Virus record (IMG/VR): IMGVR_UViG_3300025869_002060
Location: 62,001 to 126,000 of that record
DNA length: 64,000 nt
Reading direction: 5' to 3' (one strand)
The notes below the pieces were generated by a model that searched no databases, was not told where the DNA came from, and worked only from the letters and a program-made list of their open reading frames with translations. Positions 12,711-41,920 of this stretch are shown piece after piece (position 1 is the stretch's first letter; each line of letters starts with the position of its first letter). The position numbers and the translations under genes are program-made.

Positions 12711-13241
12711 ATGGACTTAATGTTGGATATTGAAACACTAGGCACTAGACCCAAGTGTGTTGTATTAACTATTGGCGTTGTGAAGTTTGATCCTCGCAAA
12801 CCCGGAACTAAACAAACATTATATTTAAAACCAAATATTGATGAACAATCAAATTTAGGTAGAGAAATACAAGAAGATACTGTAGCATGGTGGGAACAAC
12901 AAGCCGACGATGTTAAAGAAGAAGCACTTAGCAATGACAATCGAATCTCAGTAACTGAAACATTAAAAGAACTTAACAAGTTTTTTGTCGGTGCTAACAA
13001 TATGTGGGCTCAAGGTCCTGCATTTGATTTTGTTATTATGGAAGATCTTTACAGAGATTTTAATATGCCTACTCCTTGGAATTTTTGGCAGATTAGAGAT
13101 AGTCGTACACTATTTGGTGTACACGGCGACCCAAGGCAAAAAGGTAAAGCAGGACTACACAATGCACTAGAAGATGCAATTAGCCAAGCTGAAGCAGTAC
13201 AGACAGTATTCAAACGAATAGGATTTAGTCATGCGTATTGA
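12711..13241 (+). CDS. DEDDh 3'-5' exo(ribo)nuclease
   Basis: MLDIETL, WAQGPAFDF, RDSRT, HNALEDA; sigma70-like TTGACA...TATAAT upstream (~12655-12682). Confidence 0.9.
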   Translation: MDLMLDIETLGTRPKCVVLTIGVVKFDPRKPGTKQTLYLKPNIDEQSNLGREIQEDTVAWWEQQADDVKEEALSNDNRISVTETLKELNKFFVGANNMWAQGPAFDFVIMEDLYRDFNMPTPWNFWQIRDSRTLFGVHGDPRQKGKAGLHNALEDAISQAEAVQTVFKRIGFSHAY

Positions 13242-14376
13242 AAGTGATGTCAAGTTAGATTATAACAATGTACTGATTAGACCTAAACGTTCAACTCTAG
13301 GTAGTCGTAAAGAAGTTGACTTATCACGAAAATTTAAATTCCGCAACTATGGCGGAGGATTTGATCTTGGTCAATATGATTATGAAGGCGTGCCAATTAT
13401 GGCGGCTAACATGGATGGTGTTGGTACGTTTGAAATGGCTGAAACATTGGCAAAAAAGAAAATGTTTACTTGTCTTGCAAAATCATATACCGGTGATGAT
13501 ATAATCAATTGGCTTAACACATCAACAAATAATATTGCTGATATATCAGACTACTTTGCATATAGCATGGGCATTGTTGAACAGGATCTTGACAAGTTTG
13601 ACTATGTTTATAGCTCTTATCCTGAAATGATTAAATACGTTTGTGTTGATGTAGCCAATGGTTATAGTGAACGATTTGTAGACTTTATTAGAAATCTACG
13701 TAAAGAGTATCCAAACATTGTTATTATTGCAGGTAATGTAGTGACAGCAGATCAGACTCAGGAGTTGCTTCTAAATGGAGCCGACATTATTAAGGTGGGC
13801 ATTGGTCCTGGTAGTGTTTGCACTACTCGTATACAGACTGGTGTGGGATATCCCCAACTTTCCGCTGTCATTGAATGTGCTGATGCGGCTCACGGTCTTG
13901 GTGGCCTTATTATCGCTGATGGTGGATGTACTTGTCCTGGAGATGTGGCAAAGGCTTTTGCAGGCGGCGCTGACTTTGTAATGCTCGGGGGTATGTTGTC
14001 TGGACATGTTGAAGGTGGCGGCGAGGTAATTACTAAGATTTACGAAACTAACGAAGTAACTAAAACTGATGACGGATTCTTTGAATTAGTTTATGAAGAA
14101 AAACAGTTTGTACAGTTCTACGGTATGAGTAGCAAAGCCGCAAACGAAAAACACTTTGGCGGGCTTAAAGAATATCGAAGTAGCGAAGGTCGTGAAGTAC
14201 TGGTTCCTTTTAAAGGAGAAGTAGGAAATACAGTACAAGATTTGTTGGGTGGTATCCGAAGTACTTGTACATATGTTGGAGCAAACAATCTTAAACAACT
14301 AAGTAAGTGTACAACTTTTATAATTGCACAAAGTCAATATAACTCTGTGTACGAACATATGGATACATCAAAATGA
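13231..14376 (+). CDS. guaC: GMP reductase
   Basis: [67 protein letters not shown]. Confidence 0.96.
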
Positions 14377-16349: not shown

Positions 16350-17564
16350 TTAATATTTTAGTACTTTGTTTAAATGTGCGATATCAGTATTTTGAACAAA
16401 GTCCCAGCCACCCGAATCAACAAAACCTTTCTTTAAGTTAGTAGTTAATTCATTTATCACCGTGTTTTTTAGTTTATAATAAAATATATTGGCATTATGT
16501 TCTAGTATAGGAGTCATTTCTTTGCGTAAATTACATTGTTGTTCATATGATAATTCACTTAAATTCTGAAGTATTTTATAAACAGCATCAATCCTTTCAG
16601 CATTGTCTATTATATCATCATAACTTTCGTCCCAAAATTCACTAAATGTTTTAAATCCATATTCTCTAAGGTATGCTAAATTTCCTTTAGCACCAAGCAA
16701 TAGAAAAGGTTGCATTGCAACAATAGGTTTGAATATCTTTTCTGTTAAATGCAATTTACCATTATAAAAACAAGTTTCACTTACTACATGTACCAATGCA
16801 CGTTGACAGTTTGCTATATCAATCCACGTACTCATACTACCATTGGGTTCATTGCTGTCAATAGAACTGCTTTCGGTTAGTAAATTAATATTATCAATAA
16901 CATGTTGATTTGTATCTTTATTAACGCGACCCATATTTACAGAATCCCGAATAACTTCTTTAATGTTATTGCCCGGGTTATAACTTACTAATCCTTGATC
17001 AATAAGTCCGCTCTCTTTTAGTCTTAATTGGAATTGTATACGATGCCATCTGTAAGGATTAATAACATTTTGATAACAGATAAAAAGTTTATCATGCGAA
17101 GTTGGAACAGAGATATTTTCTTTCCAGTATTCTCTATAATTGTCGCAACTGGCATAGCCATGATAGAACCAATATATAATTGGTGTTTGGTAAGTGTTTT
17201 CTTGTCCACTAGTAAAGTAGGATACCCGATCTCGAAGTACTTTTAATTCTTCACTTCTTTCGCTAACAAATATAACTTGTTGAAAGTTATGTTGTGGTAA
17301 ACGTTTTTCCCACAAACTTGAATCTACATCATACATCATTTCTTGTGACGACTTATACAGCCATGGTAAAATATTAGGGTATATAGGTTCTTGATCTATA
17401 AAACAAGCACACCCACGAGGCAAAGCATTTTTTTTGATGGGGTTAACATTTTTAATTAAATAGTACGGAGGCTTATTTGTAAAGTCCGTTGCCGCAAATG
17501 TATCAATTTTATATTTTTCAAAAAATTCTTTATATATTTTTTGGTAAACAAATTGAATATCCAT
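16350..17564 (-). CDS. Putative glycosyltransferase-like protein (TEK motif family)
   Basis: VVSET...HLTEKIFKPI...PFL..G..GNL.YLR.YGFKTF..FWDESYD; resembles the GT10-type xTEK motif. Confidence 0.55.
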   Translation of the reverse strand: MDIQFVYQKIYKEFFEKYKIDTFAATDFTNKPPYYLIKNVNPIKKNALPRGCACFIDQEPIYPNILPWLYKSSQEMMYDVDSSLWEKRLPQHNFQQVIFVSERSEELKVLRDRVSYFTSGQENTYQTPIIYWFYHGYASCDNYREYWKENISVPTSHDKLFICYQNVINPYRWHRIQFQLRLKESGLIDQGLVSYNPGNNIKEVIRDSVNMGRVNKDTNQHVIDNINLLTESSSIDSNEPNGSMSTWIDIANCQRALVHVVSETCFYNGKLHLTEKIFKPIVAMQPFLLLGAKGNLAYLREYGFKTFSEFWDESYDDIIDNAERIDAVYKILQNLSELSYEQQCNLRKEMTPILEHNANIFYYKLKNTVINELTTNLKKGFVDSGGWDFVQNTDIAHLNKVLKY

Positions 17565-17588
17565 TTTAAAATTACTCCAGGAGTTAGT

Positions 17589-18842
17589 ATGACATATAAA
17601 GTAGGTTTCGTTGGTTTAGGAAAATTAGGAATGCCATGTGCTGAATCAATGCAACAAATATATAACGTGACCGGCTATGATATTTACCCTAAGGAAAGTG
17701 GTGTTATAGATATTGTAGATTCGATCAAAGAAACCGTTACTGGGAAAGATTTAATTTTTGTTGCTGTACAAACTCCACACGAAAAAGAATACGACGGATC
17801 ACAACCAACTGCTCATTTAGAAAACAAAGACTTTGATTATAGTTTGGTCAAAGAAGTATTGACAGAAATTAATCAATATACAAACAAAGATACATTAATT
17901 GTTTTGATATCAACTGTACTTCCTGGAACAGTCAGACGTGAATTTGCTCCTATTGTTACAAATGCACGTTTTATATATAACCCATATTTAATAGCAATGG
18001 GCAGTGTAGCATGGGATATGGTAAACCCTGAGATGTTAATTATTGGAACAGAAAACGGAGAAACTGATAACGATGCTAATATACTACAAGAGTTTTATAT
18101 GCCGTTAATGGAAAACAATCCAAGAACTGTAATAGGCACTTGGGAAGAAGCAGAAAGTATTAAGATTTTTTACAATACATTTATTAGTGCTAAACTAAGT
18201 CTTGTTAATATGATACAAGATGTAAGTATGAAACTTGGTAATATGAATGTTGATGTAGTTACTGATGCTCTTGCGGCAAGTACCAAAAGAATAGTAAGTC
18301 CAAAATATATGACTGCTGGGATGGGTGATGGCGGGCCATGTCATCCGCGTGACAATATTGCGTTACGCCATATGGCACAGGATTTAAATTTAGGCTACGA
18401 TTTATTTGATGCTATTATGCAGTCAAGAGAACTACAAGCACGTAACGTTGCATTGTATTTGCAGAAGTTACATAGAGAACATTATATGCCTGTTGTTATA
18501 CACGGAAAAGCATACAAACCAGATGTACCGTTCACTGATGGAAGTTACAGTTTATTAATTGGACATTACCTTGACGAACTAGATGTACATTATTACTATG
18601 CTGATCCATTGGTTGCTAGTAAAGATTTTGATGATTGGTACAAGGATGAAATTGGTGTACGTTGTATTTTGTTTCTTGCACATAACCGAATGGTCACGTA
18701 TGGTTATACAGGAACTAGACAAGAACAGAACTTGTATGTTACACTAAAAAGTAAGAGCATAGTTGTTGATCCGTGGAGAAACTTTGAAACCGATCGTAAC
18801 GACATTAAAGTAATACACTACGGAAACACAAGGAAAACATGA
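17589..18842 (+). CDS. UDP-glucose/GDP-mannose 6-dehydrogenase family protein
   Basis: VGFVGLGKLG, FVAVQTP, STVLPGT, YNP, AESIK..YN, GGPCHPRD, GKAYKP; GGAG SD. Confidence 0.92.
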   Translation: MTYKVGFVGLGKLGMPCAESMQQIYNVTGYDIYPKESGVIDIVDSIKETVTGKDLIFVAVQTPHEKEYDGSQPTAHLENKDFDYSLVKEVLTEINQYTNKDTLIVLISTVLPGTVRREFAPIVTNARFIYNPYLIAMGSVAWDMVNPEMLIIGTENGETDNDANILQEFYMPLMENNPRTVIGTWEEAESIKIFYNTFISAKLSLVNMIQDVSMKLGNMNVDVVTDALAASTKRIVSPKYMTAGMGDGGPCHPRDNIALRHMAQDLNLGYDLFDAIMQSRELQARNVALYLQKLHREHYMPVVIHGKAYKPDVPFTDGSYSLLIGHYLDELDVHYYYADPLVASKDFDDWYKDEIGVRCILFLAHNRMVTYGYTGTRQEQNLYVTLKSKSIVVDPWRNFETDRNDIKVIHYGNTRKT

Positions 18843-19363
18843 CAAACATAATTCACGGAAAACTAGAGTTTGATATAGACAATGAATTTTTAGAATTAGA
18901 TTATCAACGAGAAGATTTTAACAACCCCAAAGACTTAAACGAATGGAATGATAACCACTACGATTGGGTAACGCATTTTACTGGATTTTTATGTGATATG
19001 CGTAAGCCACAGCCAAGTTGGAACGAAAAAATAATTGAATATTTCGAATCTACATTTGGATGGCAAGATATTGGAACCAGTTATTATAGAATGGATAGCG
19101 GAGTTATTTTACCTACTCATCAAGATACCTATAAAAAATACGTTGATATTTTTAAACTACACGGAAAAGAAGATACAATCTATAGAGGCATAGTATTTTT
19201 ACAAGACTGGCAAAGTGGTCATTATGCCGAGTATGATAATAAGATTCTTAGCTCGTGGAAAGCAGGCAACTTCGTAGTATGGAACAACGATACTTCTCAT
19301 ATGGCCGCAAACATTGGTGTAACACCTCGTTATACTCTACAGGTAACCGGACATGTTGCATAG
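18839..19363 (+). CDS. 2OG-Fe(II) oxygenase / cupin-like protein
   Basis: LPTHQD (HxD) ... HMAANIG..PRYTLQVTG (distal His, Arg). Confidence 0.75.
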   Translation: MTNIIHGKLEFDIDNEFLELDYQREDFNNPKDLNEWNDNHYDWVTHFTGFLCDMRKPQPSWNEKIIEYFESTFGWQDIGTSYYRMDSGVILPTHQDTYKKYVDIFKLHGKEDTIYRGIVFLQDWQSGHYAEYDNKILSSWKAGNFVVWNNDTSHMAANIGVTPRYTLQVTGHVA

Positions 19364-20273
19364 TCATAATGAATGGGATCCACTTAGAGAAATAATAGTA
19401 GGCTCCGCAACTGGTGCTAATTGGCCTTCTGAAGATCCAGTCTTCAGTCAAGAGCATTTAAAAACTACATGGAAAGAAACTCCAGTCCCAAGTGGGCCAG
19501 TACCGTCCTGGGTAATTGACGAAGCAAACGAAGACCTACAAAGGTTAGCATCAGCATTGGTAAACCTTGGTGTTAAAGTTCATAGACCAAAAGATATGGA
19601 TTTTGTTGAACGCAAAGGCTTATACAATTACTGCCCACGTGATAGGCTTATTGTTGCTGGTGATAGTGTTATTGATACACCAATGCTTTATCCTTGTAGA
19701 GATATGGAAACAGAAGCACTTGATGAGGCGTTGACTCGTGCTAAACATGTGTACCGTATGCCACGTGATAAAGGTATTATACTAGATGCGGCCAATGTAC
19801 TCAGACTCAATGACAAATGGTTGTATTTAATAAGCGAGAGTGGCAACATCGAAGGGCTTGAATGGTTACGTAATAATATTCCAGATGTTGATATTGAACC
19901 CTGTAATTTTTATTCAGGAGTACATATTGATAGTACTATTACAATTATAAGAGAAGGTTTAGTTGTACTAAACGGAACAAGAGTCGATCATAATAATTGT
20001 CCTAGGGTATTTGATGGTTGGCTTAAAATTTATGTCAACGATGTTGTTCCACAGGACTTCTTTGAATACCCATATGCCAGTAAGTGGATAGCATTGAACA
20101 TGCTGGCGGTTGATGAACACACTGTTATCGTGGACAAGTGGCAGACCAAACTTATTAGAGATCTTGAAGCATTGAAGTTAACTGTAGTACCATTGGAGTT
20201 GCGTCATAGTCGCACACTAGGTGGCGGTTTTCATTGTGTAACATTAGATTTAATACGTAAAGTTAGTAGTTAA
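19353..20273 (+). CDS. Amidinotransferase (glycine/inosamine-phosphate amidinotransferase family)
   Basis: NEWDPLREIIVG, YCPRD, DAANVLR, HIDST, RTLGGGFHCVTLD (Asp-His-Cys triad). Confidence 0.92.
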   Translation: MLHSHNEWDPLREIIVGSATGANWPSEDPVFSQEHLKTTWKETPVPSGPVPSWVIDEANEDLQRLASALVNLGVKVHRPKDMDFVERKGLYNYCPRDRLIVAGDSVIDTPMLYPCRDMETEALDEALTRAKHVYRMPRDKGIILDAANVLRLNDKWLYLISESGNIEGLEWLRNNIPDVDIEPCNFYSGVHIDSTITIIREGLVVLNGTRVDHNNCPRVFDGWLKIYVNDVVPQDFFEYPYASKWIALNMLAVDEHTVIVDKWQTKLIRDLEALKLTVVPLELRHSRTLGGGFHCVTLDLIRKVSS

Positions 20274-20334
20274 TGTCTACTGTAATTTTTAGTAAATAAG
20301 TAAATGCAAAGGAACATGTCCGAAGGAATTGCAG

Positions 20335-21087
20335 ATGTCTGAAGATTATAAAAATTATAGTGAGTGTTTATTTAAAAGTGTTCACGACAATCCTAGAGTT
20401 AAAGACTTTAGTAAAAAGAAGTCTGAGATTATTGATGAAGTGCTATCTTATTATAGTCTAAACAAGCATGCCATGAGTGTACTATTTGTAGGATTTAATC
20501 CAGCAATTCTTGTATGTGATTTTCAATCTATTTCTGTGACAGGGGTCACCAGTGAAGTAGTTGAATGGTTACAAAGTCATAATAGTAATATTGAATATGT
20601 TGACTTTGATAGTATTATAGGTAACGGTAATATATCATGGGACGCAATCGTAGCAGTAGATGAGTTCTTTACATATGCATTAGATGATGATTATCAAAAA
20701 GCATCCATTGCAAACATTTGTGGTTTGGCTAACGAAGTTGTTATAAGTACATTGAAGGACTATAAGAACTTGGACTTTAAAGAAAAGGAGTTTAGTCAAC
20801 CAGCAGTATTACGTAATGGTGAAAAATTTAAAATATTTACAGAGTTCCATGATTGGGATTTTAAAGATAGAAGTTGCTGGAAAACTTCAGTTTATGTAAA
20901 TGGATCTAATAATTCACAATACGGACCGTATAACCGAAAGACTATGTATTTTAAACAACTAGCAAAATTCAGCATTGATGCTGGAGCCAGCAGTTTTCTT
21001 GTACACAAGAACTTGATGTTCAAAGGATTAATCAAAAAGAACTACGAACACGTAGTTAGCATAAGATTCAATGATGAGTATAGATGA
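20335..21087 (+). CDS. Degenerate class I SAM-methyltransferase-like protein
   Basis: SVLFVGF at the motif I position and WDAIVAVDEFFTY resembling motif IV; glycine-rich loop eroded. Confidence 0.4.
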   Translation: MSEDYKNYSECLFKSVHDNPRVKDFSKKKSEIIDEVLSYYSLNKHAMSVLFVGFNPAILVCDFQSISVTGVTSEVVEWLQSHNSNIEYVDFDSIIGNGNISWDAIVAVDEFFTYALDDDYQKASIANICGLANEVVISTLKDYKNLDFKEKEFSQPAVLRNGEKFKIFTEFHDWDFKDRSCWKTSVYVNGSNNSQYGPYNRKTMYFKQLAKFSIDAGASSFLVHKNLMFKGLIKKNYEHVVSIRFNDEYR

Positions 21088-22327
21088 TACATTAAAAAAC
21101 TTAACAGACAATGTCACAGACACAATACTAAAAGATGTTAAAGCTAAAGCATCTGAGCATGTGTCAGCAGTTATTAAGGATCATATACAAAGTATGGACC
21201 TTGACAGCATTGTCAGCGAAAGTATTAAAACCCATGTAAACACATGGCTTGACAGTCATGAAGATTGGCTAACTAAAACTGTCAATCCAATTATTGACCT
21301 AGTAAGGCGTGATGCCAGTGCCGCAGTATTAGAAAAAGCATCAGACGATATCAAAGAAGCCATTGGTAAACAAGTATCAAAATTTGATGAATTAGCAACA
21401 AAAGGTTTTGCTGATCAATTCCATGCACGATTACGTGATTTTAATTTTCCTCCAGAAAGCATACCAGCCACTGCTTTAAAATTTAATCCAGAGACCATTA
21501 GTGGAGATAACATCAGCGGTGGAATACAACGCAACTTTAATTCAGTTGGCATACAGGATTTAGCCAATGATGTTCAGATGACTGTATCCAATGATGCTAC
21601 AACATTTGAAAATAAGCTAGTAGCCAGTGAACTTGAAGTTGTTGGTAAAACAACATTGAAGTTTGTTGAAATGGAAGGTATTAATACTGCTAGTCCGTTT
21701 TATCTAAAGTTGATTGAAAATGTTAGTACCAGTGCCGCACACAAAATCAATGATGACATATTCCAATCATACAGTGATAAGGTGTTTGATCGTATTGCTA
21801 TCGAAGGTGTTGACATTACAGTATTACGAGTAAACGGAAACGTTGTATTTGAAGATAATAAAATTGGCGGACATATAACAGAAAGCAATTTACGTAAAGT
21901 TGGTAGACTTAAAGAACTAGATATTGAAGGTGAGCTTTCTGTTAGCAACAACTCACTTTATGTATCGGGCAAAAGAGTTGGCATCAACACAACAGAACCA
22001 AGTGCGGCGTTAAGTGTGTGGGATAGTGAAGTAGAAGTAGAAATAAAAAGATTTGATCAAGACACTGCTGTTATACAAACTCCACGGAATCAAGATCTTG
22101 TTATATCATCAAATAAACAATCAAATTTACGTTTAACAGTTGATGGAACTACACAAGTACAAAAATTACAAATGGGTACTATGACTTTTAAAAGCTCTGA
22201 TAAACCACCAAATTATACTGATGGTAAAGGTGCAGTAGTATTCAATGCTAACCCAAGTCTAGGTGGTCCATTGGGCTGGGTTTGTTTAGGTGGAACTAAC
22301 TGGGCTAACTTTGGCGTCATTGACTAA
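21071..22327 (+). CDS. Probable virion structural (fibre-like) protein
   Basis: Helical N-terminus; RVGINTTEPSAALSV; C-terminal PLGWVCLGGTNWANFG typical of fibre ends. Confidence 0.55.
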   Translation: MMSIDDTLKNLTDNVTDTILKDVKAKASEHVSAVIKDHIQSMDLDSIVSESIKTHVNTWLDSHEDWLTKTVNPIIDLVRRDASAAVLEKASDDIKEAIGKQVSKFDELATKGFADQFHARLRDFNFPPESIPATALKFNPETISGDNISGGIQRNFNSVGIQDLANDVQMTVSNDATTFENKLVASELEVVGKTTLKFVEMEGINTASPFYLKLIENVSTSAAHKINDDIFQSYSDKVFDRIAIEGVDITVLRVNGNVVFEDNKIGGHITESNLRKVGRLKELDIEGELSVSNNSLYVSGKRVGINTTEPSAALSVWDSEVEVEIKRFDQDTAVIQTPRNQDLVISSNKQSNLRLTVDGTTQVQKLQMGTMTFKSSDKPPNYTDGKGAVVFNANPSLGGPLGWVCLGGTNWANFGVID

Positions 22328-22351: not shown

Positions 22352-23323
22352 ATGAAAGAGACTGTACTTGGAAAAAATTTCGGCTTGATGCTAGAAGACG
22401 TTGACTTAGTCAAGTATTCATCCGAAAATTTTGAAGAATTATATAGCAAATTTGTACACAATAAATTCTTGGTTATTCGAGGACATCGCGAATTAACTGA
22501 TCACGAGTTTTCAAACACGTTTACTATGTTTGGAGATGGGTTCGTTTGGGACGAGGCATTTGAACGAACTGGAGTTGGTGAAGTACATAAAATCATTCAT
22601 AGAGATACTCCTCCATCAGCAGGAAAAGAAAATGCCTGGCACAACGAACTTAGTTGGCAAAAAAATCCTTGTAAGGCTGTGGTAATTAATTTAAAAGTTG
22701 TTCCAGCATATGGCAGTGATACATTATGGATTGATACTAATAAAGTATGGGAAAACTTGCCGGCGCCATTGCGTCAACTTATACATAAAAAATCAGCATT
22801 ACATTCTCCACCAACAGAAAATTATCATACAGAAATTGTAAAAATGAAAGAGCAACAAGCCGATAAAGGTTTTGAAACAGATGCTATTCATCCAATGGTT
22901 ATTCAGCATCCAGATACAGGCTTGTGGCACGTATATGTTAATCCGTTGTTTACTCAATACATCAAAGGCATGGCAAAGAAAGATAGTTATTGGGTACTTC
23001 ATCAAATATACGACACATTTCATATACCTGAATTCCAGTATAGACATAGATGGCAACCAGGTGATATTATCCTATGGGACAACAGATCCACAGTACATTA
23101 TGCATGTAGTGGGTACTTTCCAAACTATCGTGAAAGCAGACGATTAATGCTCATAAGCCAAAAAGGTAAACCAGAGTGGAATACAGTTGATCATCTTCCG
23201 TTGCCTTCTGAAGAAGAATACTTTAGAAGTAACCCAGAGTTCTACGGAGGTATAAGACGCCACCGAAATAGAAAACAATGGTTCACTAGAGATATTGAAA
23301 AATTGCTTGAACAATACGGTTGA
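22352..23323 (+). CDS. TauD/TfdA-family 2OG-dependent dioxygenase
   Basis: WHNELSW (HxE), GSDTLWID, HPMVIQHPDTG, YRHRWQPGDIILWDNRSTVH, RR. Confidence 0.92.
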   Translation: MKETVLGKNFGLMLEDVDLVKYSSENFEELYSKFVHNKFLVIRGHRELTDHEFSNTFTMFGDGFVWDEAFERTGVGEVHKIIHRDTPPSAGKENAWHNELSWQKNPCKAVVINLKVVPAYGSDTLWIDTNKVWENLPAPLRQLIHKKSALHSPPTENYHTEIVKMKEQQADKGFETDAIHPMVIQHPDTGLWHVYVNPLFTQYIKGMAKKDSYWVLHQIYDTFHIPEFQYRHRWQPGDIILWDNRSTVHYACSGYFPNYRESRRLMLISQKGKPEWNTVDHLPLPSEEEYFRSNPEFYGGIRRHRNRKQWFTRDIEKLLEQYG

Positions 23324-28429: not shown

Positions 28430-29470
28430 ATGAATATATGTTACCAACCTTGGGTAGGACTTGATATTAGTCCACAAGGAGAATACAAACCTTGTTGCAA
28501 ATACTCACATGCAATCAGTGACAACTACAACGATTATCGTAACAGTGATGAACTTAACCAATTAAAACTAGATCATCTCAACGGTAAACGTCCTGACGGT
28601 TGTGCCAGATGTTGGAAAGATGAAGATAACGGGTTACCCAGCAAAAGGCAAATGGATTACGAATATCATTTGAATTCACAGCCTCCTGAACTTGAAAAAA
28701 CGTTGTTGTTAAGTGTAGCATTTGGTAATACATGCAATCTAGCATGTCGCATATGTTCTAGTTATAGCAGTAGTCGCTGGAGCAACGAAGCAAAAAAACT
28801 TGGCGCTTTGTTTCCCAAGTTCATGCATCAGCAATTCTACAAAACAGATGAGTTTAAATCAATGTTGAATGACCTAAGTGGAGACTTGGTTCATATTGAT
28901 ATTCCTGGCGGAGAGCCATTTTTAACTGAAATACCAGAACATATTGAATTCTTAAAACATTTGATTGCTATTGACAATACACCAAGTCTACATTACACAA
29001 CTAACGGAACTCAATGGCCAAAAGGATTAACCAAATTATGGAACCATTTTCCAGAAGTAGATATACAACTAAGTCTTGACGGTACAGGTTCTAAATTTGA
29101 ATACCAACGTTGGCCTGCTAAATGGGATATTGTATACGAGAATATTAAACAATTCCAAGAACTATCAAATAAACATCAGAATATAAGGTTAAGTGTTAGT
29201 CATTCTGTTAGCATATATAATATATTAGACTTAGACAATTTCAAAACATGGTGTGATGCAGAAGGACTACCAACACCATGGATAGGCTTGGTAACAAGAC
29301 CCGAGTACTTAGATATAAAGTGTGCTCCGGAAAATTTTAAAGATAATTTGGATAATATAGACTTTGACAATTTTATAAAATATGTTAATATACTAGACAG
29401 TTCACGAGGACAAAACTTTAAAACTACTTTTCCTGAGCTATGGAATTTAATTAACGATAGGAAGAAATGA
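28430..29470 (+). CDS. Radical SAM protein with N-terminal SPASM/twitch-like Cys cluster
   Basis: CYQPW...KPCC...CARC; CNLACRIC (CxxxCxxC); GGEP; YTTNGT; SLDG; TAAATA-N5-ATG start. Confidence 0.88.
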
Positions 29471-30695: not shown

Positions 30696-31139
30696 ATGTA
30701 CGAGTATAAATGTAAAATTCTAAAAGTAATTGACGGCGACACCGTTGATATTGATATTGACCTAGGTTTTGACGTAGTATTAACTAACCAACGTGTTAGA
30801 ATGTTTGGAATTGATACTCCAGAATCCAGAACAAGAGATAAAGAAGAAAAGAAATTTGGACTACTAAGTAAAAAGTATGTTCTTGACAGGCTACCTAAAG
30901 GAAGTTACCAAACACTTAAAACTGAAATTGACAGAGATGGCGATGATGCAAGAGGAAAATTTGGTCGTATACTTGGTAGTTTTATGGTATATGATAGTGT
31001 TGATGATCGACAAAGTAGTATCAATGAAATGATGATACGAGATGGGTATGCTGTAGCATATCACGGTCAGAACAAAGATGATATACTTGCAGAGCATATG
31101 TCCAATAGAGACAAGCTAAAGGCCGCTGGCGTTATATGA
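30696..31139 (+). CDS. Thermonuclease (SNase) family protein
   Basis: VIDGDTV, RVRMFGIDTPE, GKFGRILG, INEMMI.DGYA; TAAATA at 30660-30665. Confidence 0.92.
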   Translation: MYEYKCKILKVIDGDTVDIDIDLGFDVVLTNQRVRMFGIDTPESRTRDKEEKKFGLLSKKYVLDRLPKGSYQTLKTEIDRDGDDARGKFGRILGSFMVYDSVDDRQSSINEMMIRDGYAVAYHGQNKDDILAEHMSNRDKLKAAGVI

Positions 31140-34100
31140 AAATCAAAGAACTCAAGATAGACAAACCAGTTGATAGCAACTGGGGCATTCCTCGTTCACA
31201 AATGCCTCAGATACAAACCAACGACTATCCTGCGTTCCTTGACTACCTAGATTCGCATGGTGTTAATTTTGTAAAAGATACTGTTCCAGCACACTCATTA
31301 AAACCTATACAAGGCGAATTTAGTGATAAAGGTGTTGAGAAAGCACTAGCTAAACGTAAACTTGATAAACCTTGTATTGTTAGCAGTGATGGTCATATCA
31401 TTGACGGACACCACAGGTGGTTGGCGGCACTTAACACAAAGCAAAACGTTAGTGTATACAAAGCTGATATACCAGCACACGATTTATTAAAGTTAGTAAA
31501 CGATTTTCCTAAAGTGTATTACAAAAACATATACACTGAAAGTGATGTTAACTATGTTAAACCACAGTTTGATGTAGAATGGGAAGAAGCAAATCGTTAT
31601 AACTACTTTGACAAACTAGGACAAGCAGGTTGGGAAGAACTTGCAAGTAAAGGAAAAGTTGTAAAAGTTAATACAAATAGTGTAAAGAAAATAGGCAATA
31701 CAGGTGCAGACGGAAGCGAATCATTAGATGATTTAGAAACAGATAAAGTTGCAAGATTAAAAAAAGCAATGGCCAGCGGTACAGTTGAAATGCCAATAGT
31801 TGTTAAACAACCAAATGGAAGTTTAGATTTGGTTGCAGGAAACACTAGACTAATAGGACTTATAAGCACACAAGGTGAAGCAAAAGTTTGGTTAGTGGAT
31901 GCAAGTAAGTTAGAAGAAAACTTTGCAGACGGTAAAGTAAAAGGTAAAAGTAGACCAGGACGAGTTAAAAAGTCCGGTGCTAGTTGTAATGGATCAGTAA
32001 CAAGTCTTAGAGCCAAAGCAAAAAAAGCAAGTGGCGAAAAAGCAAAAATGTATCATTGGTGTGCTAACATGAAATCAGGAAAGAAGAAAGCCAAGAAAGA
32101 ATCAGTGGAATCAGACAACATAATATCTGATGAAGTTCGTGTACTTGGAAAACTGTTTACCAAAAACGGATACGAAATAAGAGTGGTAGGTGGTGCAGTT
32201 AGAGATGTAGCACTTGGAAAAGAACCAAAAGACATTGATTTAGCTACAGATGCAACACCAACAGAGATGCAAGCCATGTTTGATAAGGCTAACCTTAAAC
32301 ATATACCTACAGGCATAGAACACGGTACAATTAGTGTTATAATTGACAAAGAACCCTACGAAATTACCACCTTAAGGGCAGATAAAGAGACTGACGGACG
32401 ACATGCTGAAGTAGAGTTTGTTCGTAGTTGGGAACAAGATGCTGAACGTAGAGACTTAACATACAATGCAATGAGCATGGACATGGATGGTAAAATTCAT
32501 GACTACTTTAATGGCATGGATGATCTACAAGATAAAGTAAGTCGTTTTGTTGGTGATCCTACTAAACGTATACAAGAAGATTATCTACGTATATTACGAT
32601 ACTTTCGTTTTCAAGCAAGGCTAGACAAACCAAAGTTTGACAAAGAAGCAATTGATGCTATTAGCAAAGAAGCAAAAGGACTTAAACAAATAAGTGCCGA
32701 ACGTGTATGGATGGAAATATCAAAGTTATTGATTGCACCAAGTGCAATACCAGTGCTAAAGCAAATGGGAGAAACTGGCGTAGCTGATGTTATTGGATTA
32801 GATGTTAGCAATGCTAACAGTGTTAAATTTGATAATCCTATTATGAATCTAGCAATGTTATCAGATGATGTTGGTATTGGTGCTAAGTGGAAAATGTCCA
32901 ACGACAACAAAACTGAATTAGCATTTTATATAGCACACAAAAATAAAAAATTAAGTCAACAAGATGTTGAGGATATGATCAGTGATGGAGCGCCTGCAAC
33001 CTACTTAGCAAATGTTCTAAAGATACAAGGGCAAGATCCAAATTGGGCTAAGGCACAAGTTCCGCAATTTCCTGTAACAGGTAAAGACTTGATTAATTTT
33101 GGAATTAAACCTGGTCCAAACATGGGTAAGATGCTTGATGTATTAAAACAGCAATGGAAGAAATCACGTTTTACAGCCAGCAAAGAAGATTTATTAAACA
33201 CATTAAAGGAATCATTGATTAATCCTGATCCAAAATTACCAAATCTTAAAGAACCAAAAAAATTAAGCAAGTATTCAAAACGTAAAAAAGTGTTCAGTGA
33301 TAATAAAGATAAACCTGAAAACGAGGAACCCGAAAACTCCACCGATAACATTGTTGAAGACCTATCAGCTAATGCAGAATTGTATGTAGACATGGATGGT
33401 GTACTTGCGGACTTCTTTGGCGAGTGGGCAAAACTAATAGGTGTTGATAGCTGGCGTAATATTAAAAACATTGAACCAGCATTAGAGAAGATCAGGCAAC
33501 AAAAAGATTTCTGGATTAACTTGCCAATGACAAGCAATGCTCTACAATTATTAAGTGCCATTAAAGCATACAAAGGCAAGTATAACATATTAAGTGCTCC
33601 GTTACCCGGTGATAAGAACTCTGAACCACAGAAACGTGCATGGATTAAAAAGAATTTAAGTTCTTTCCCGCCAGAAAAAATTATTATTGATCATAACAAG
33701 GCCGCCTATGCAACCCAACCAGATGGAACACCAAATGGATTGATTGATGACTTTGGGCAAAATGTTAGTAAATGGGAAGCCGCAGGTGGAATTGCTATTA
33801 AACATAATGATCTAAAAATAGATAGAACTATAAGCAAATTGGACAAAGAAACAAGTACACCTTCGTATAGTATAAACGAAGATGATGTTGAAGTAAGCAT
33901 GTATGGTGATGCTGAAAAAGGTTATACACTAAGCAAAATTGTAGTACCAAAAGAATTACGTGGGACAGGTATTGGTTCCAAGAAGATGCGAGAGCTTGTT
34001 GATAAAGCAGATAACGAAGGCGCTATTATTGCACTCACACCAGACACAACGTTTGGAGCATCATCTAAAGGACGATTAATTAAATTTTATAAAGGATTTG

Positions 34101-34198
34101 GATTTGTACCGAATGTAGGCCGTAACAAAGATTTCCGTTACAGGGAGACCATGATTCGTTACCCCAAGTCGAGTGGAGGTAAAGATAGCACTCAATGA
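31136..34198 (+). CDS. Multidomain protein: two ParB/Srx-like domains, basic module, CCA-adding tRNA nucleotidyltransferase, HAD 5'(3')-nucleotidase-like domain, GNAT acetyltransferase
   Basis: IIDGHHRW; PIVV...LVAGNTR; VGGAVRD..DIDLAT, RRDLTYNAM, EDYLRILR; YVDMDGVLADF, LIDD; VPKELRGTGIG, FYKGFGF. Confidence 0.88.
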   Translation: MKIKELKIDKPVDSNWGIPRSQMPQIQTNDYPAFLDYLDSHGVNFVKDTVPAHSLKPIQGEFSDKGVEKALAKRKLDKPCIVSSDGHIIDGHHRWLAALNTKQNVSVYKADIPAHDLLKLVNDFPKVYYKNIYTESDVNYVKPQFDVEWEEANRYNYFDKLGQAGWEELASKGKVVKVNTNSVKKIGNTGADGSESLDDLETDKVARLKKAMASGTVEMPIVVKQPNGSLDLVAGNTRLIGLISTQGEAKVWLVDASKLEENFADGKVKGKSRPGRVKKSGASCNGSVTSLRAKAKKASGEKAKMYHWCANMKSGKKKAKKESVESDNIISDEVRVLGKLFTKNGYEIRVVGGAVRDVALGKEPKDIDLATDATPTEMQAMFDKANLKHIPTGIEHGTISVIIDKEPYEITTLRADKETDGRHAEVEFVRSWEQDAERRDLTYNAMSMDMDGKIHDYFNGMDDLQDKVSRFVGDPTKRIQEDYLRILRYFRFQARLDKPKFDKEAIDAISKEAKGLKQISAERVWMEISKLLIAPSAIPVLKQMGETGVADVIGLDVSNANSVKFDNPIMNLAMLSDDVGIGAKWKMSNDNKTELAFYIAHKNKKLSQQDVEDMISDGAPATYLANVLKIQGQDPNWAKAQVPQFPVTGKDLINFGIKPGPNMGKMLDVLKQQWKKSRFTASKEDLLNTLKESLINPDPKLPNLKEPKKLSKYSKRKKVFSDNKDKPENEEPENSTDNIVEDLSANAELYVDMDGVLADFFGEWAKLIGVDSWRNIKNIEPALEKIRQQKDFWINLPMTSNALQLLSAIKAYKGKYNILSAPLPGDKNSEPQKRAWIKKNLSSFPPEKIIIDHNKAAYATQPDGTPNGLIDDFGQNVSKWEAAGGIAIKHNDLKIDRTISKLDKETSTPSYSINEDDVEVSMYGDAEKGYTLSKIVVPKELRGTGIGSKKMRELVDKADNEGAIIALTPDTTFGASSKGRLIKFYKGFGFVPNVGRNKDFRYRETMIRYPKSSGGKDSTQ

Positions 34199-38452: not shown

Positions 38453-39760
38453 ATGTTAGAACTACTGTTAATTGGTATACTAGGACTAGTTGTTGGAATG
38501 GCACTAGGACTGTTTAGTGTTTTTCCTATATATTTTGCAGGCTTTGTTGTGTATGCATTACACACGGCTTGGACACCTGAGTTGTTATTGGTGTTTTGGG
38601 CTACAGCCGCTATTGGAAGTCAGTTCTTTGGAAGTGTTAGTACAATCACACTGGGTATACCTGGAGAAGCAAGTGCCTTAGTATGGATCAAAGACCTCAA
38701 AGGCATGAGTTTACAAGAACGAAACTATTTGCTATACCATACTGCTAAAGGTAGTTTGTTTGCAGGATTAATAGCTCTAGGTGTTGTGTGGTTAGCCTAT
38801 CATTGGGTAAGTGCTTACAGTTACTTTCTATCAAGCGTCAATTTTGTATTAGCAATGTTCCTGTTGGTTATTGCACTATTTGCATTTACCGATCGTAAAC
38901 CTTTAATAGCAATTGGTTTGTTATGTTTGGGTACGTTCTTAGGCCCTGTTAATAACTTTGCATTGCCACCCTGGTGGTATCATGTGCAACTTTGGTTTGA
39001 AAATACCAGCTTCTTTATGCTTATTGCAAGTATGATGTTGATACCAGATCTAATAATGGACAGAGCTAACTTTAAACATATAAAAACAGATCATTTTGAA
39101 CCCAGTGATAACGACGAACGAACATGGTGGACTATATCTAAGAGTACCGTTATTGGTTTATTCAGCGGATTGGTACCAGGACCAGCGGCTGAAACTGCTA
39201 GTGCATTGGCATACCATGCTCACAAAAAGAAAGGTAGATTCCATCAGATTGTTGGTGCCGAAACTGCTAACAATCCCGGAGTGGTAATGATGTTACTTCC
39301 TTTCTTTGCAATGGGTTTACCAATTACTGCTAGTGCTTTGATTATATCAACAGTACTAGATGTTAAGAACGTCGATCCTGTAGAATTTGTAGCAAGTGCA
39401 TCATCAGTCATTCCAAGTTTCAGTGTATTTGATGTTATCATAATGGTAGCTTCAATTGCTACAGTATTTTATTATCTACTCAGCACTCGCTTTATTGATC
39501 TGTACGTAAACATTGTAAAATTCTTATACAGTAAGAGTGCTTACTTGTTGGTCATTATTGTGTTTGCAATGATAATAGCAGATATGAGTGTCAACGAAAC
39601 GCCAGTCTGGCTTTACTCAATCTTACTACTTTTTTTTACCGTCGGCGGTATCTTGCTTAAATACTTCAGTATTAATCCTATCCTGTTTATATTTGGAACA
39701 ATGTTCGGCGATAAACTAATTTGGACACTCATGCAGTTTACATCAATAAACTTTTCATAA
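38453..39760 (+). CDS. Tripartite tricarboxylate transporter permease TctA-like
   Basis: About 12 TM segments, FFGSVSTITLGIPGEAS, GLVPG, GAETANN, LPFFAMGLPITAS. Confidence 0.8.
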   Translation: MLELLLIGILGLVVGMALGLFSVFPIYFAGFVVYALHTAWTPELLLVFWATAAIGSQFFGSVSTITLGIPGEASALVWIKDLKGMSLQERNYLLYHTAKGSLFAGLIALGVVWLAYHWVSAYSYFLSSVNFVLAMFLLVIALFAFTDRKPLIAIGLLCLGTFLGPVNNFALPPWWYHVQLWFENTSFFMLIASMMLIPDLIMDRANFKHIKTDHFEPSDNDERTWWTISKSTVIGLFSGLVPGPAAETASALAYHAHKKKGRFHQIVGAETANNPGVVMMLLPFFAMGLPITASALIISTVLDVKNVDPVEFVASASSVIPSFSVFDVIIMVASIATVFYYLLSTRFIDLYVNIVKFLYSKSAYLLVIIVFAMIIADMSVNETPVWLYSILLLFFTVGGILLKYFSINPILFIFGTMFGDKLIWTLMQFTSINFS

Positions 39761-40782: not shown

Positions 40783-41736
40783 TTACTTAGCTTCTAAAAT
40801 CTGACCTACTAAGTCTTGGCTGAAATAACCATCAAACTGGTCATAAACTGTAGAAGTTGCGTCTTTAAATTCTGCAACTGCTTCAGGTGTCCATTCGATA
40901 ACTTTAATGCCTTCTTCAATAGCACGACTTTTAGCGGCCGCACCGTCGATTAATGACTCTTCTCTTTCAGCTACTGCGGCAATCTTTGCACATTCAGTAA
41001 TAACAGCCTGTTGTTCGGCTGTTAGGCTATTCCAAATCTTGTCTGAAATAACAATGCTTGTTAAGAATAAAGCATGTTCAGTATCTGCAACTGTATCAGT
41101 GACAGTGTTGACAGCAGAACGGAAGTAACGTGGGAACACGTTCTCGCCGCCTTCACACTCGCCAGATGCAACTGACTGTGCAAAACCATCAACGCCCATT
41201 GGTACTGTGTTAACACCAACTGCTTTGAAAGTAGCTTCTGAAACTGGGCTTGTACCACATCTCATTGTTGTACCAGCAAAGTCTGCAATACTATGAACTT
41301 CGTCATTAGTAGCAATCATTTTGAATCCACCACTGTATGTGAACGCAAGTCCACGTGCGCCGGAAGTATCAGCTAGTCCGTCTAGTAGGTAGTGTCCTAC
41401 TGGTCCGTCTAGTACACGAGCGGCATGATCGTGATTTTCAAAGATGAAAGGCATATCGAGTGAATAGTAGTCTTCATTTAAAAGACCAAGAACAGTACTA
41501 TAAGTTTGGCTCATAGAAACTTCACCTTGCTCTAGCTTCTTTAGAAGAGCACGGTTTCCAATTTCTTCACCGTTATTGTACTTGTCTTGCCATTCGTTTT
41601 TACCTAGGACTTCAACTTCAATTGCTCCATCAGTTTTTTCACTTACTGCCTTACTGAAAGCTTCAGCTGAGCGAAGGAAAAGATCGTATGGAACATGAGC
41701 TAAGACCCAAGTAAGTTTTAGGGTATCTTTGTTCAT
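40783..41736 (-). CDS. TRAP transporter DctP-like solute-binding protein lacking a signal peptide
   Basis: FSKAVSEKTDGAIEVEV, LDMPFIFENHDHA.RVLDGPVG, DFAGTTMR, GGEN, IWNSLTAEQQ; AAGGAG SD 10 nt before ATG 41736. Confidence 0.85.
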   Translation of the reverse strand: MNKDTLKLTWVLAHVPYDLFLRSAEAFSKAVSEKTDGAIEVEVLGKNEWQDKYNNGEEIGNRALLKKLEQGEVSMSQTYSTVLGLLNEDYYSLDMPFIFENHDHAARVLDGPVGHYLLDGLADTSGARGLAFTYSGGFKMIATNDEVHSIADFAGTTMRCGTSPVSEATFKAVGVNTVPMGVDGFAQSVASGECEGGENVFPRYFRSAVNTVTDTVADTEHALFLTSIVISDKIWNSLTAEQQAVITECAKIAAVAEREESLIDGAAAKSRAIEEGIKVIEWTPEAVAEFKDATSTVYDQFDGYFSQDLVGQILEAK

Positions 41737-41920
41737 TTTATACATTCTCCTTATATATGCATATATTTTAGCTTTACATCTATTCAACAAAAAAATTTAC
41801 TAGTATATATCTTTGTTGGGGGAATCTACAACGGGTTGGTTGTAAAGTATAAGATTTCTGCTAATGTTATTTATGCTGTCTAGGAAATCTAGTCAACATA
41901 TCTTCTAGTTTACTACCTTA

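Follow-up and report, generated by a model that had tools for sequence, protein, structure and literature searches.

The source record covers part of the genome of an abundant marine jumbo phage, which is T4-like, as relatives carry the Gp23 capsid protein; complete relatives measure 330–354 kb. In the 64,000-nucleotide stretch analysed (the window), all six genes claimed by an earlier sequence-only reading were found in their places, with a dioxygenase gene beyond them:

16350–17564, minus strand: predicted GT-B glycosyltransferase P0004, 404 aa (AlphaFold model and fold search)
17589–18842, plus strand: NDP-sugar 6-dehydrogenase-like protein (UGDH/GMD family), 417 aa (Pfam, PHROG, PDB)
18839–19363, plus strand: cupin P0002, 174 aa, of the Fe(II)/2-oxoglutarate oxygenase type (AspH/LpxO-like; motif, homologues)
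19353–20273, plus strand: amidinotransferase P0001, 306 aa, L-arginine-dependent, StrB1-like branch of the AGAT/StrB1 family (PDB phmmer)
20335–21087, plus strand: P0003, 250 aa, accessory, possibly class I methyltransferase-like, with a degenerate motif I (ESM features)
21071–22327, plus strand: P0005, 418 aa, coiled coil plus beta domain, fibre-like (model, fold matches)
22352–23323, plus strand: TauD/TfdA-family Fe(II)/2OG dioxygenase (Pfam PF02668, E 4e-45)

The dehydrogenase starts at ATG 17589, with a GGAG ribosome-binding site, rather than at TTG 17541, and since the divergent glycosyltransferase starts at 17564, the head-to-head gap is exactly 24 bp. Downstream, dehydrogenase and cupin overlap by 4 bp and cupin and amidinotransferase by 11 bp, stop-start codon overlaps that indicate translational coupling. 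Coordinates and motifs thus bear out the overlapping, co-oriented dehydrogenase (GGPC), HxD..H oxygenase and amidinotransferase of the sequence-only reading.

P0001 had no Pfam match, and phmmer searches of the PDB returned StrB1, the Streptomyces griseus L-arginine:inosamine-phosphate amidinotransferase (1bwd, E 2.4e-63), as its best solved relative, followed by AGAT (1e-31), SxtG (1e-25) and HsvA (5e-24). The alignment with StrB1 runs end to end, although P0001 lacks ~33 residues (StrB1 138–172), and alignment to solved relatives identifies D145, H191 and C295 as its catalytic triad. Among P0001 homologues, D97, D145, H191, D193, R210, S243 and C295 are invariant or nearly so; every catalytic and arginine donor-binding residue, shared with StrB1, is kept, and the enzyme is intact as had been claimed from its D-H-C triad. 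To our knowledge, all characterised members of the family amidinate a primary amine with arginine as the donor, and the acceptor of StrB1 is a cyclitol phosphate. Evolutionarily, P0001 sits in a separate phage clade, apart from Streptomyces StrB1; it shares only about 39% identity with the copy in the S. griseus genome, and its neighbours are the UGDH-like, cupin and GT-B genes rather than aminocyclitol genes. AGAT/GATM, CyrA, SxtG and HsvA belong to the same superfamily and share the covalent Cys-amidino mechanism, but their substrates are glycine, a saxitoxin precursor or polyamines, they are far more distant from P0001 than StrB1 is, and the phage gene is unaccompanied by creatine (GAMT), PKS or toxin genes. 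Homologues number in the thousands in metagenomes, with >598 viral contigs carrying one, and amidinotransferase genes were annotated earlier in Campylobacter CP220-like phages and cyanophage S-SCSM2R, so that the gene's occurrence in phages is not new in itself.

The dehydrogenase matched Pfam PF03721 (N-terminal, E 1e-15) and PF00984 (central, E 6e-17), phrog_9148 (E 6e-94) and PDB UGDH entries (up to E 3e-19), with the catalytic Cys, Lys, Asn and Asp aligned and its GGPCHPRD motif lying over GGSCFPKD of a solved UGDH. Its TIGR03026 score of 147 bits falls below the NCBIfam cut-off of 189.8, and a UDP-binding domain was not recognisable by Pfam search. Its identity is 54% to gp227 of cyanophage Bellamy and 46% to pelagiphage HTVC008M, both of which have the UGDH-like gene without an amidinotransferase; as the gene is also missing from 4/67 related loci, the two are not obligately coupled. 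In the cupin, H94-x-D96...H154 and R164 are invariant (36 homologues), and the C-terminal His...Arg stretch aligns with AtsK. Pfam AspH (PF05118) weakly matched 19/36 homologues (best E 1e-5), with the window's own copy below the Pfam cut-off for this family.

P0004 had no Pfam, PHROG or PDB match by sequence. Its AlphaFold model (pLDDT 86.6, pTM 0.89) retrieved GT-B enzymes as every top Foldseek match, with T4 beta-glucosyltransferase (BGT), T4 alpha-glucosyltransferase (AGT) and the H. pylori alpha1,3-fucosyltransferase of GT10 as nearest folds (VIA Z-scores 11.8, 10.3 and 10.2). By its modelled structure P0004 is a GT-B fold glycosyltransferase, GT10/BGT-like, although it lacks sequence-level membership in these families. 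The conserved motif ET..KLHLTEKIFKPI includes an invariant E275 and K276, a GT10-like E-K pair. The modelled fold bears out the glycosyltransferase-like label of the head-to-head gene noted earlier for its TEK motif. Other phage proteins join the P0004 domain to NDP-sugar epimerase/dehydratase or methyltransferase domains.

The three downstream genes appear more peripheral. P0003, whose true start is ATG 20335, had no Pfam, NCBIfam or PDB match; its family is conserved at 60% mean column identity and its ESM (language-model) features resemble those of class I SAM methyltransferases (score 0.94). The ORF previously called degenerate methyltransferase-like is present, its name supported only by this likeness, and it is accessory, occurring in only 36/66 related loci. 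P0005, modelled as helical at residues 1–122 and 209–245 with a beta domain at 300–418 (pLDDT about 90), gave local fold matches in BFVD and Atlas to tail-fibre, pectate-lyase tailspike and intramolecular-chaperone (Peptidase_S74) proteins and carries a weak MYRF-ICA-like motif, RVGINT..PS.AL. Its N-terminal coiled coil and fold matches lend moderate support to the fibre-like label, and it too is accessory (42/56 loci); in one locus (L101) a homologue with 34% identity adjoins a different amidinotransferase subtype. The TauD/TfdA dioxygenase probably lies outside the conserved module, as only 2/56 related loci have it close to the amidinotransferase.

Gene-neighbourhood conservation, a test set beforehand, was assessed across 70 distinct related phage loci, with denominators that differ per gene. 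The genes proved co-conserved: the cupin is present in 69/70 loci, the dehydrogenase in 63/67, and P0004 lies upstream on the opposite strand in 57/64. The tightest unit comprises only the cupin and the amidinotransferase, which would also fit free-amino-acid chemistry.

Could this co-conservation be mere inherited synteny within one phage lineage, with the genes serving unrelated processes? Most of the 70 loci come from a single clade of T4-like jumbo phages, and synteny extends to the unrelated repair gene UvdE (32/41 loci). Against this, besides the overlapping stop and start codons, the same partners recur rearranged in distant lineages (cyanophage S-SCSM2R, marine contigs and a cultured Bdellovibrio chromosome) at 24–49% protein identity. 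There the amidinotransferase has kept the cupin, the dehydrogenase, glycosyltransferases and a mini DegT-type PLP enzyme as companions, but the gene order varies: miniDegT-rSAM-GT-cupin-AmT-GT2 amid five glycosyltransferases in S-SCSM2R, carbamoyltransferase-cupin-miniDegT-AmT in L102, AmT-cupin-miniDegT-UGDH in L103, and GT-UGDH-cupin-miniDegT-FolE-AmT in L121 (AmT, amidinotransferase). In L106 the amidinotransferase lies within a deoxysugar cluster (three SDRs, RmlC, GT7), and the chromosome of Bdellovibrio sp. HCB2-146 holds an amidinotransferase, UGDH-like, SDR and mini DegT genes in a row, and a P0004 homologue (hhalign probability 99.6%). Such shuffled recurrence argues for function rather than inherited synteny, which we consider improbable, and it places the amidinotransferase in a sugar/glycan setting in independent lineages.

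S-SCSM2R offers the closest precedent for the pair: its overlapping gp308 and gp309 are homologous to the cupin (30% identity, E 2e-21) and amidinotransferase (36%), gp308 lying directly upstream of gp309, with glycosyltransferase, mini DegT and radical SAM genes around them, although UGDH is not adjacent and the tree places this amidinotransferase with those of Bdellovibrio, outside the window's clade. They were annotated as '2OG-Fe(II) oxygenase' and 'inosamine amidinotransferase', and only as an 'antibiotic synthesis gene', without a proposed pathway (PMC12801897).

The mini DegT-type enzyme, missed by the sequence-only reading, is the probable source of the amine. In the source genome (G000) it lies at 168684–169277, ~87 kb from the amidinotransferase and beside GalE and GT1; it retains the PLP-lysine motif, is found in 5/5 related genomes, and in six other lineages is a direct neighbour of the amidinotransferase. 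The neighbouring SDR in G000 scores as an ordinary GalE, so a dedicated 4-keto-forming step is not evident. Comparable logic, from NDP-sugar dehydrogenase through SDR and DegT aminotransferase to a positively charged amino sugar destined for a surface glycan, is seen in the Ugd-ArnA-ArnB route to UDP-4-amino-4-deoxy-L-arabinose and in viral DegT pathways (Mimivirus viosamine, chlorovirus glycans), and is mirrored by the Bdellovibrio UGDH-like-SDR-miniDegT row. The phage module differs in adding amidination, in its half-size DegT (about 200 aa), and in an SDR that scores as GalE rather than as an ArnA/UXS-type decarboxylase.

Functionally, we tentatively propose, with a confidence approaching an even chance, that the product of the module is an N-amidino (guanidino) sugar nucleotide, which the glycosyltransferase then transfers. 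The UGDH-like enzyme would convert an NDP-hexose to its uronic acid by oxidation at C6, the mini DegT enzyme would aminate a keto intermediate, and the amidinotransferase would pass the amidino group of L-arginine via Cys295 to the primary amine on the sugar, yielding a guanidino sugar nucleotide and ornithine. The cupin may hydroxylate the same substrate or product, and the divergently transcribed GT-B enzyme would move the finished, positively charged sugar onto an acceptor, most likely a glycan in the envelope of the infected cell or a virion fibre. In this scheme we infer the sugar's identity, the order of steps, the cupin's role, the acceptor and the biological purpose. The guanidinylated-glycan part of the sequence-only reading is thus favoured by the intact enzyme, the co-conserved genes and the recurring sugar context, whereas its creatine-like option is not.

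Less probable, though still to be taken seriously, is a role for the cupin-amidinotransferase pair apart from the sugar genes, with free amino acids or other small amines as substrates. The product would be a soluble guanidino compound, such as homoarginine, guanidinoacetate or an amidinated polyamine, or a hydroxylated form of it, with an auxiliary function in metabolism or nitrogen handling or with an effect as a toxin or antimetabolite. The characterised relatives CyrA, SxtG, AGAT and HsvA all use small amines, the pair is conserved more strongly than any other unit, and amidinotransferases also pair with unrelated 2OG oxygenases (S-SCSM2R ORF266-ORF267; the TauD-amidinotransferase fusion P0166 of Streptoalloteichus tenebrarius), with a TauD gene two genes downstream in the window. 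Yet TauD proximity is rare, and in at least six independent contexts the genes around the amidinotransferase are those of sugar-nucleotide enzymes and glycosyltransferases. Its nearest relative of solved structure uses a sugar-like cyclitol phosphate, not an amino acid, and SpeD occurs in only 1/5 genomes, so no polyamine link emerges. Nor is a GAMT-like partner conserved, which, with P0001 far nearer StrB1 than AGAT, makes a creatine-like role less likely.

DNA hypermodification is also less likely, and we hold it to be unlikely overall: the GT-B enzyme would glycosylate a modified base, or the amidinotransferase would amidinate an amine-bearing one (e.g., aminomethyl deazaguanine), giving guanidino-decorated DNA that resists host nucleases. 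The T4 DNA glucosyltransferases are the best structural neighbours of P0004, the phage is T4-like, its conserved genes include GTP cyclohydrolase I and a PTPS/QueD-like one, FolE lies directly upstream of the amidinotransferase in L121, and phage SP-15, whose DNA carries glucuronolactone, encodes UGDH. However, the BGT margin over an ordinary GT-B enzyme is small (Z 11.8 vs 10.2), QueC and TGT/DpdA were not found in five related genomes, and the sole thymidylate-synthase-family gene, present in only 3/5 genomes, scores above the NCBIfam cut-off as a genuine ThyA, indicating no hydroxymethylase; unlike T4, the lineage has no hmC or hmU pathway, and a homologous cluster sits in a Bdellovibrio chromosome. 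Least probable of all is a cyanopterin-like pathway in which a FolE- and PTPS-derived pterin is decorated with galactose and (methyl)glucuronic acid and the amidinotransferase has a side role: cyanobacterial cyanopterin needs UGDH, GalE, glycosyltransferase and methyltransferase activities, and G000 has a GT1-GalE-miniDegT-FolE-PRTase-PTPS cluster (166506–172546), but the miniDegT-FolE-AmT adjacency in L121 reflects shared ancestry rather than independent evidence (its FolE is 75% identical to that of G000), FolE is absent from the surroundings of the amidinotransferase in every other lineage, and a role for an amidinotransferase in pterin chemistry is not evident.

Our literature search turned up no account of a phage pathway of this kind, and we know of no guanidino sugar in any bacterial or viral glycan. 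If the guanidino-sugar proposal is true, this chemistry would be new both for phages and for bacterial surface glycans.

Genomically, the source IMG/VR virus record (228 kb, judged 65% complete; the window is its bases 62001-126000) has complete relatives of 329-354 kb that carry a T4-type Gp23 capsid gene, and it is therefore part of the genome of a T4-like jumbo myovirus. DNA nearly identical to it turns up in marine metagenomes with sampling dates between 2014 and 2025, and likewise in two marine metatranscriptome assemblies; since the RNA-library contigs cover both strands of the locus at a depth similar to that of DNA runs, transcription is not proven by these contigs. No cultured phage matched the locus by megablast. 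All six genes that the sequence-only reading had placed in a phage sugar-tailoring cluster were found in the window, including the 24 bp spacing between the glycosyltransferase and dehydrogenase genes (with the ATG at 17589 taken as the start of the latter), and downstream of them lie a TauD dioxygenase and then a UvdE endonuclease gene.

Genes of the cluster (window coordinates, strand, product)
16350-17564, minus strand: glycosyltransferase (P0004)
Start at the ATG at 17589, plus strand: UGDH-like NDP-sugar 6-dehydrogenase (P0006), with a GGAG site ahead of the ATG
18839-19363, plus strand: cupin (P0002), overlapping the dehydrogenase gene by 4 bp
19353-20273, plus strand: amidinotransferase (P0001), overlapping the cupin gene by 11 bp
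20335-21087, plus strand: methyltransferase-like ORF (P0003)
21071-22327, plus strand: fibre-like protein (P0005)

Scans for sigma-70 promoters, terminators and T4 late promoters gave results no better than chance. Elsewhere, the window encodes an RNR small subunit (975-2129), an IMPDH/GMP-reductase family protein a few kb upstream of the module (13231-14376, plus strand; Pfam E 1e-66), an ATP-dependent DNA ligase (43070-44377) and a 1020-aa multidomain protein (31136-34198, plus strand) that combines a cytidylyltransferase-like N-terminus with tRNA nucleotidyltransferase (CCA-adding) and 5'-3' deoxyribonucleotidase domains. A radical SAM gene (28430-29470, plus strand) sits between two ~198-aa ORFs, an arrangement annotated as ClpP - radical SAM - ClpP in a relative (L002). 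The genes for a TctA-family tricarboxylate transporter membrane subunit (38453-39760, plus strand) and a DctP-type (TRAP) solute-binding protein (40783-41790, minus strand) are nutrient-uptake auxiliary genes, which is unusual for a phage, and a 1781-aa protein with He_PIG Ig-like and YHYH domains (54148-59493, plus strand) and its 1378-aa neighbour (48986-53122), for which there were no matches, may be structural or adhesion proteins.

Functionally, P0001 is, judging from its sequence, a member of the AGAT/StrB1 amidinotransferase family (pentein/GME superfamily). It had no match in Pfam or NCBIfam and was identified through PDB sequences, aligning end to end with the solved amidinotransferases StrB1 (E 2.4e-63), AGAT (1e-31), SxtG (1e-25) and HsvA (5e-24). 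The catalytic triad is intact, as first read from the sequence: C295 (GGGFHCVTLD) aligned to StrB1 and AGAT and is invariant in two family alignments (A1 and A7), and H191 and D145 aligned to the catalytic His and Asp and are invariant or nearly so in the phage family. The counterparts are C407 of AGAT and C332 of StrB1 (GGGFHC motif), the catalytic Cys and amidino carrier, together with H303 and D254 of AGAT and H227 and D179 of StrB1, whose roles are known from published structures. Also aligned and conserved are D97 (CPRD), D193 (HID), R210 and S243, equivalent to the arginine (donor)-binding residues D170, D305, R322 and S355 of AGAT. StrB1 and P0001 thus have their conserved catalytic and arginine-binding residues in common, whereas ~33 residues between the two aligned blocks of StrB1 are missing from P0001.

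Evolutionarily, a quick maximum-likelihood tree placed P0001 in a phage clade (SH-aLRT 99), with three cupin-bearing marine contigs as its sisters, and placed Streptomyces StrB1 in a separate clade together with Microbispora and Vibrio; P0001 is therefore a member of the family and not a StrB1 orthologue. Nor does P0001 have the aminocyclitol (streptidine) genes expected around an orthologue of StrB1, a scyllo-inosamine-4-phosphate amidinotransferase; its neighbours are the UGDH-like, cupin, GT-B, fibre-like, TauD and UvdE genes. Amidinotransferases are known from the creatine, streptomycin and cyanotoxin pathways, and a creatine-like role, also suggested from the sequence, found no support here. 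Relatives of P0001 are numerous, with 7995 of 8000 scored candidates significant and many ~65% identical; given thousands of metagenomic homologues, more than 598 IMG/VR stretches encoding relatives and the near-identical marine DNA, the module is very common. The scan of genomes for homologues used a narrower amidinotransferase alignment, the broad one being too diverse for this purpose.

The UGDH-like protein scored above cut-off for both PF03721 (N-terminal NAD-binding) and PF00984 (central), and its GGPCHPRD aligned with the GGSCFPKD that contains the catalytic Cys, as did the central-helix Lys and Asn. It gave no match to PF03720 (the UDP-binding domain), for which a Bdellovibrio homologue falls just under the cut-off (29.5 vs 30), and scored 147 against a cut-off of 189.8 for TIGR03026. 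Cyanophage Bellamy (54%) and pelagiphage HTVC008M (46%) encode its closest cultured relatives, there in the company of genes for glycosyltransferases, NadE, a carbamoyltransferase and a methyltransferase but with no amidinotransferase. P0002 is a small cupin of the Fe(II)/2-oxoglutarate oxygenase type, in which an iron triad (H94, D96, H154) and a basic, 2OG-binding R164 are invariant in 36 sequences, and its C-terminal stretch aligned with AtsK. Against PF05118 (AspH/LpxO) it scored 15.8 bits, below the cut-off of 22.6, with 19 of the 36 homologues matching at E<1 (best 9.6e-6), and its profile found nothing significant among PDB sequences.

P0004 is, on its structural model, a GT-B glycosyltransferase of GT10-like type. 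The model (pLDDT 86.6) has the two-Rossmann-domain GT-B fold, with Foldseek probabilities of 0.9-1.0 to OtsA, WaaG and FUT13, and its nearest folds are T4 BGT, T4 AGT and H. pylori FucT (VIA Z 10-12). By sequence, neither PF00852 nor another CAZy-linked family was matched in Pfam, NCBIfam or PDB sequences, the sole link to a CAZy-type family being a weak Atlas lead (score 0.80). Other phage proteins join the P0004 domain to one of the NDP-sugar epimerase/dehydratase type or to a methyltransferase domain. The methyltransferase-like character initially noted for P0003 shows only as a resemblance to class I SAM methyltransferases in ESM features (similarity 0.94): motif I is degenerate (VLFVGFNP in place of the glycine-rich E/DxGxGxG), with no Pfam methyltransferase match and nothing significant in a PDB-sequence profile search. 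In P0005 a coiled coil at the N-terminus precedes a C-terminal beta domain, the one part modelled with confidence in an otherwise poor monomer model (pTM 0.32); its BFVD and Atlas neighbours are tail fibre, tailspike and intramolecular-chaperone (ICA) proteins (E 3e-4 to 1e-2), and neither structure nor sequence profile searches gave a significant PDB match.

Co-conservation of the cluster was borne out across 70 distinct viral loci of one lineage (denominators vary by gene). Upstream of the amidinotransferase are the cupin (69/70, directly adjacent in 65), the UGDH-like gene (63/67) and, on the opposite strand, a P0004-like glycosyltransferase (57/64); downstream are P0003 (36/66) and P0005 (42/56), and TauD was near the amidinotransferase in 2 of 56. 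With a single lineage as the source of all these loci, their co-conservation alone could be synteny, and UvdE is likewise syntenic with the cassette. Five loci (L035, L045, L048, L061 and L062) carry insertions between the cupin or UGDH gene and the amidinotransferase, namely 176-aa small reverse-strand ORFs, a further P0004-like paralogue or an ORF of 405 aa akin to proteins at ~205 kb of the source genome, and the module thus tolerates gene insertions. The closest "cellular" matches (57-61% identity), on two contigs of a Haliscomenobacter sp. MAG (L108 and L111) and on L109 and L110, have the phage cassette in full, UvdE included, and fall inside the phage clade; these contigs are probably of phage origin, swept into MAGs by binning, which may hint at Bacteroidota (Saprospirales) as hosts of this subclade. 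In the relatives L005-L007, the upstream flank near the module encodes ribosomal protein S21, HSP70/DnaK, HSP20, ClpS, a fatty-acid desaturase and a D-Ala-D-Ala carboxypeptidase.

Distant lineages supply the stronger evidence: the cluster's partners reappear there in rearranged order, and among them is a half-size DegT-type PLP enzyme (mini DegT). This ~200-aa protein keeps the PLP-lysine motif and occurs in all five related phage genomes; in the source genome its gene (168684-169277) lies beside GT1 and GalE, the latter above the NCBIfam cut-off. Cyanophage S-SCSM2R has the order mini DegT-radical SAM-glycosyltransferase-cupin-amidinotransferase-GT2 inside a run of glycosyltransferases, its cupin being 30% (E 2e-21) and its amidinotransferase 36% identical to those of the window. 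A Tara scaffold reads carbamoyltransferase-cupin-mini DegT-amidinotransferase; another contig, amidinotransferase-cupin-mini DegT with a UGDH-like gene on the opposite strand; a third, radical SAM-amidinotransferase-P0005-like; a phage-like contig in a Legionellales MAG, glycosyltransferase-UGDH-cupin-mini DegT-FolE-amidinotransferase; and a 95-kb contig carries the amidinotransferase within a deoxysugar cluster. On the chromosome of the cultured Bdellovibrio sp. HCB2-146, the amidinotransferase lies between radical SAM genes, beside radical SAM-UGDH-like-SDR-mini DegT and a P0004-like glycosyltransferase (hhalign 99.6%); a 161-aa ORF of this cluster was rejected as the cupin.

Two further clusters lie outside the window. 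The conserved one that holds the mini DegT gene (G000:C1:166506-172546) reads GT1 - GalE - mini DegT - GTP cyclohydrolase I - 142 aa - phosphoribosyltransferase - two ORFs - PTPS/QueD-like, and has the look of a pathway for pterins or purine derivatives that is tied to sugar genes. The other (G000:C1:190654-198086), in which a genuine ThyA adjoins a 4,6-dehydratase-like SDR and a full-length PseC/LegC-like DegT aminotransferase, also carries a P0004 paralogue (360 aa, 35% identity) and is a third sugar-tailoring cluster of the same phage.

To our knowledge, all characterised members of the amidinotransferase family move arginine's amidino group onto a primary amine via a Cys-amidino intermediate. 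By analogy, P0001 would transfer it from L-Arg to the primary amine of a sugar, which a DegT-type PLP enzyme could install, in a setting where a nucleotide-sugar oxidoreductase, an oxygenase and glycosyltransferases are the recurring partners on offer. From this family chemistry and these sugar partners, an N-amidino (guanidino) sugar nucleotide is predicted as the most likely product, with slightly less than even confidence, and the GT-B enzyme P0004 would then pass the finished sugar onward. An Ara4N-like route via a UXS/ArnA-type decarboxylase is unsupported in this phage, because the SDR adjoining mini DegT is GalE. As for the acceptor, a second amidinotransferase of S-SCSM2R lies in a KdsA/KdsB context and has been reported as detected in the virion proteome (PMC12801897); together with the fibre-like neighbour in the window, these observations point, not decisively, to a virion or envelope glycan.

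The main rival, which we consider rather improbable, is that the product is a small molecule instead of a sugar. The tightest unit is the cupin plus the amidinotransferase, and pairs of amidinotransferase and 2OG oxygenase recur with unrelated oxygenases, as in S-SCSM2R ORF266-267 (ORF267 was rejected as a P0002 homologue) and in a Streptoalloteichus TauD-amidinotransferase fusion. In the latter (P0166, 769 aa, Streptoalloteichus tenebrarius, WP_253672611.1), a TauD/TfdA dioxygenase and a StrB1-like amidinotransferase domain, 42% identical to residues 143-302 of the query, are naturally fused, which suggests that oxygenase-amidinotransferase chemistry is coupled in actinomycetes too. A polyamine link via SpeD was rejected because SpeD was found in one of five genomes only. 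DNA hypermodification by the module, which the T4 BGT and AGT folds nearest to P0004 would favour, is weakened by the absence of QueC and TGT/DpdA from five related genomes, by a ThyA that is genuine and patchy (missing from two of the five) and by the homologous cluster on the Bdellovibrio chromosome; 7-deazaguanine modification was accordingly rejected for want of QueC and TGT, and an hmC or hmU pathway on the ThyA evidence. A pterin-glycoside pathway would rest on FolE and PTPS close to mini DegT, but the FolE adjacency in the Legionellales contig reflects shared ancestry (75% identity).

We know of no amidinotransferase tied to nucleotide-sugar or glycan biosynthesis, nor of any study of a phage copy. 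Full-text literature searches found no mention of guanidino sugars, whether in phages or in glycans, and phage amidinotransferases appeared there in passing, as annotations only (Campylobacter CP220-like phages and S-SCSM2R), the S-SCSM2R enzyme being called an "antibiotic synthesis gene" (PMC12801897). The enzyme families are all known; their combination, abundance and implied chemistry are new, and the cultured cyanophage S-SCSM2R and cultured Bdellovibrio offer experimentally tractable counterparts. If the small guanidino metabolite were the true product, the module would amount to a new auxiliary pathway that consumes arginine in nitrogen-poor oceans; if the guanidino sugar were, it would supply a new cationic building block for glycobiology and a new phage route to surface remodelling. 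In its fullest form, which we put forward as possible though unlikely, cosmopolitan marine T4-like jumbo phages, some cyanophages and Bdellovibrio would turn arginine and an amino-uronic or amino-deoxy sugar into a guanidino sugar nucleotide and place the permanently cationic sugar on the virion fibre or infected-cell envelope. Such a sugar would represent a type of glycan building block so far known from no organism, and would have effects on adsorption, superinfection exclusion or resistance to cationic or anionic defences.
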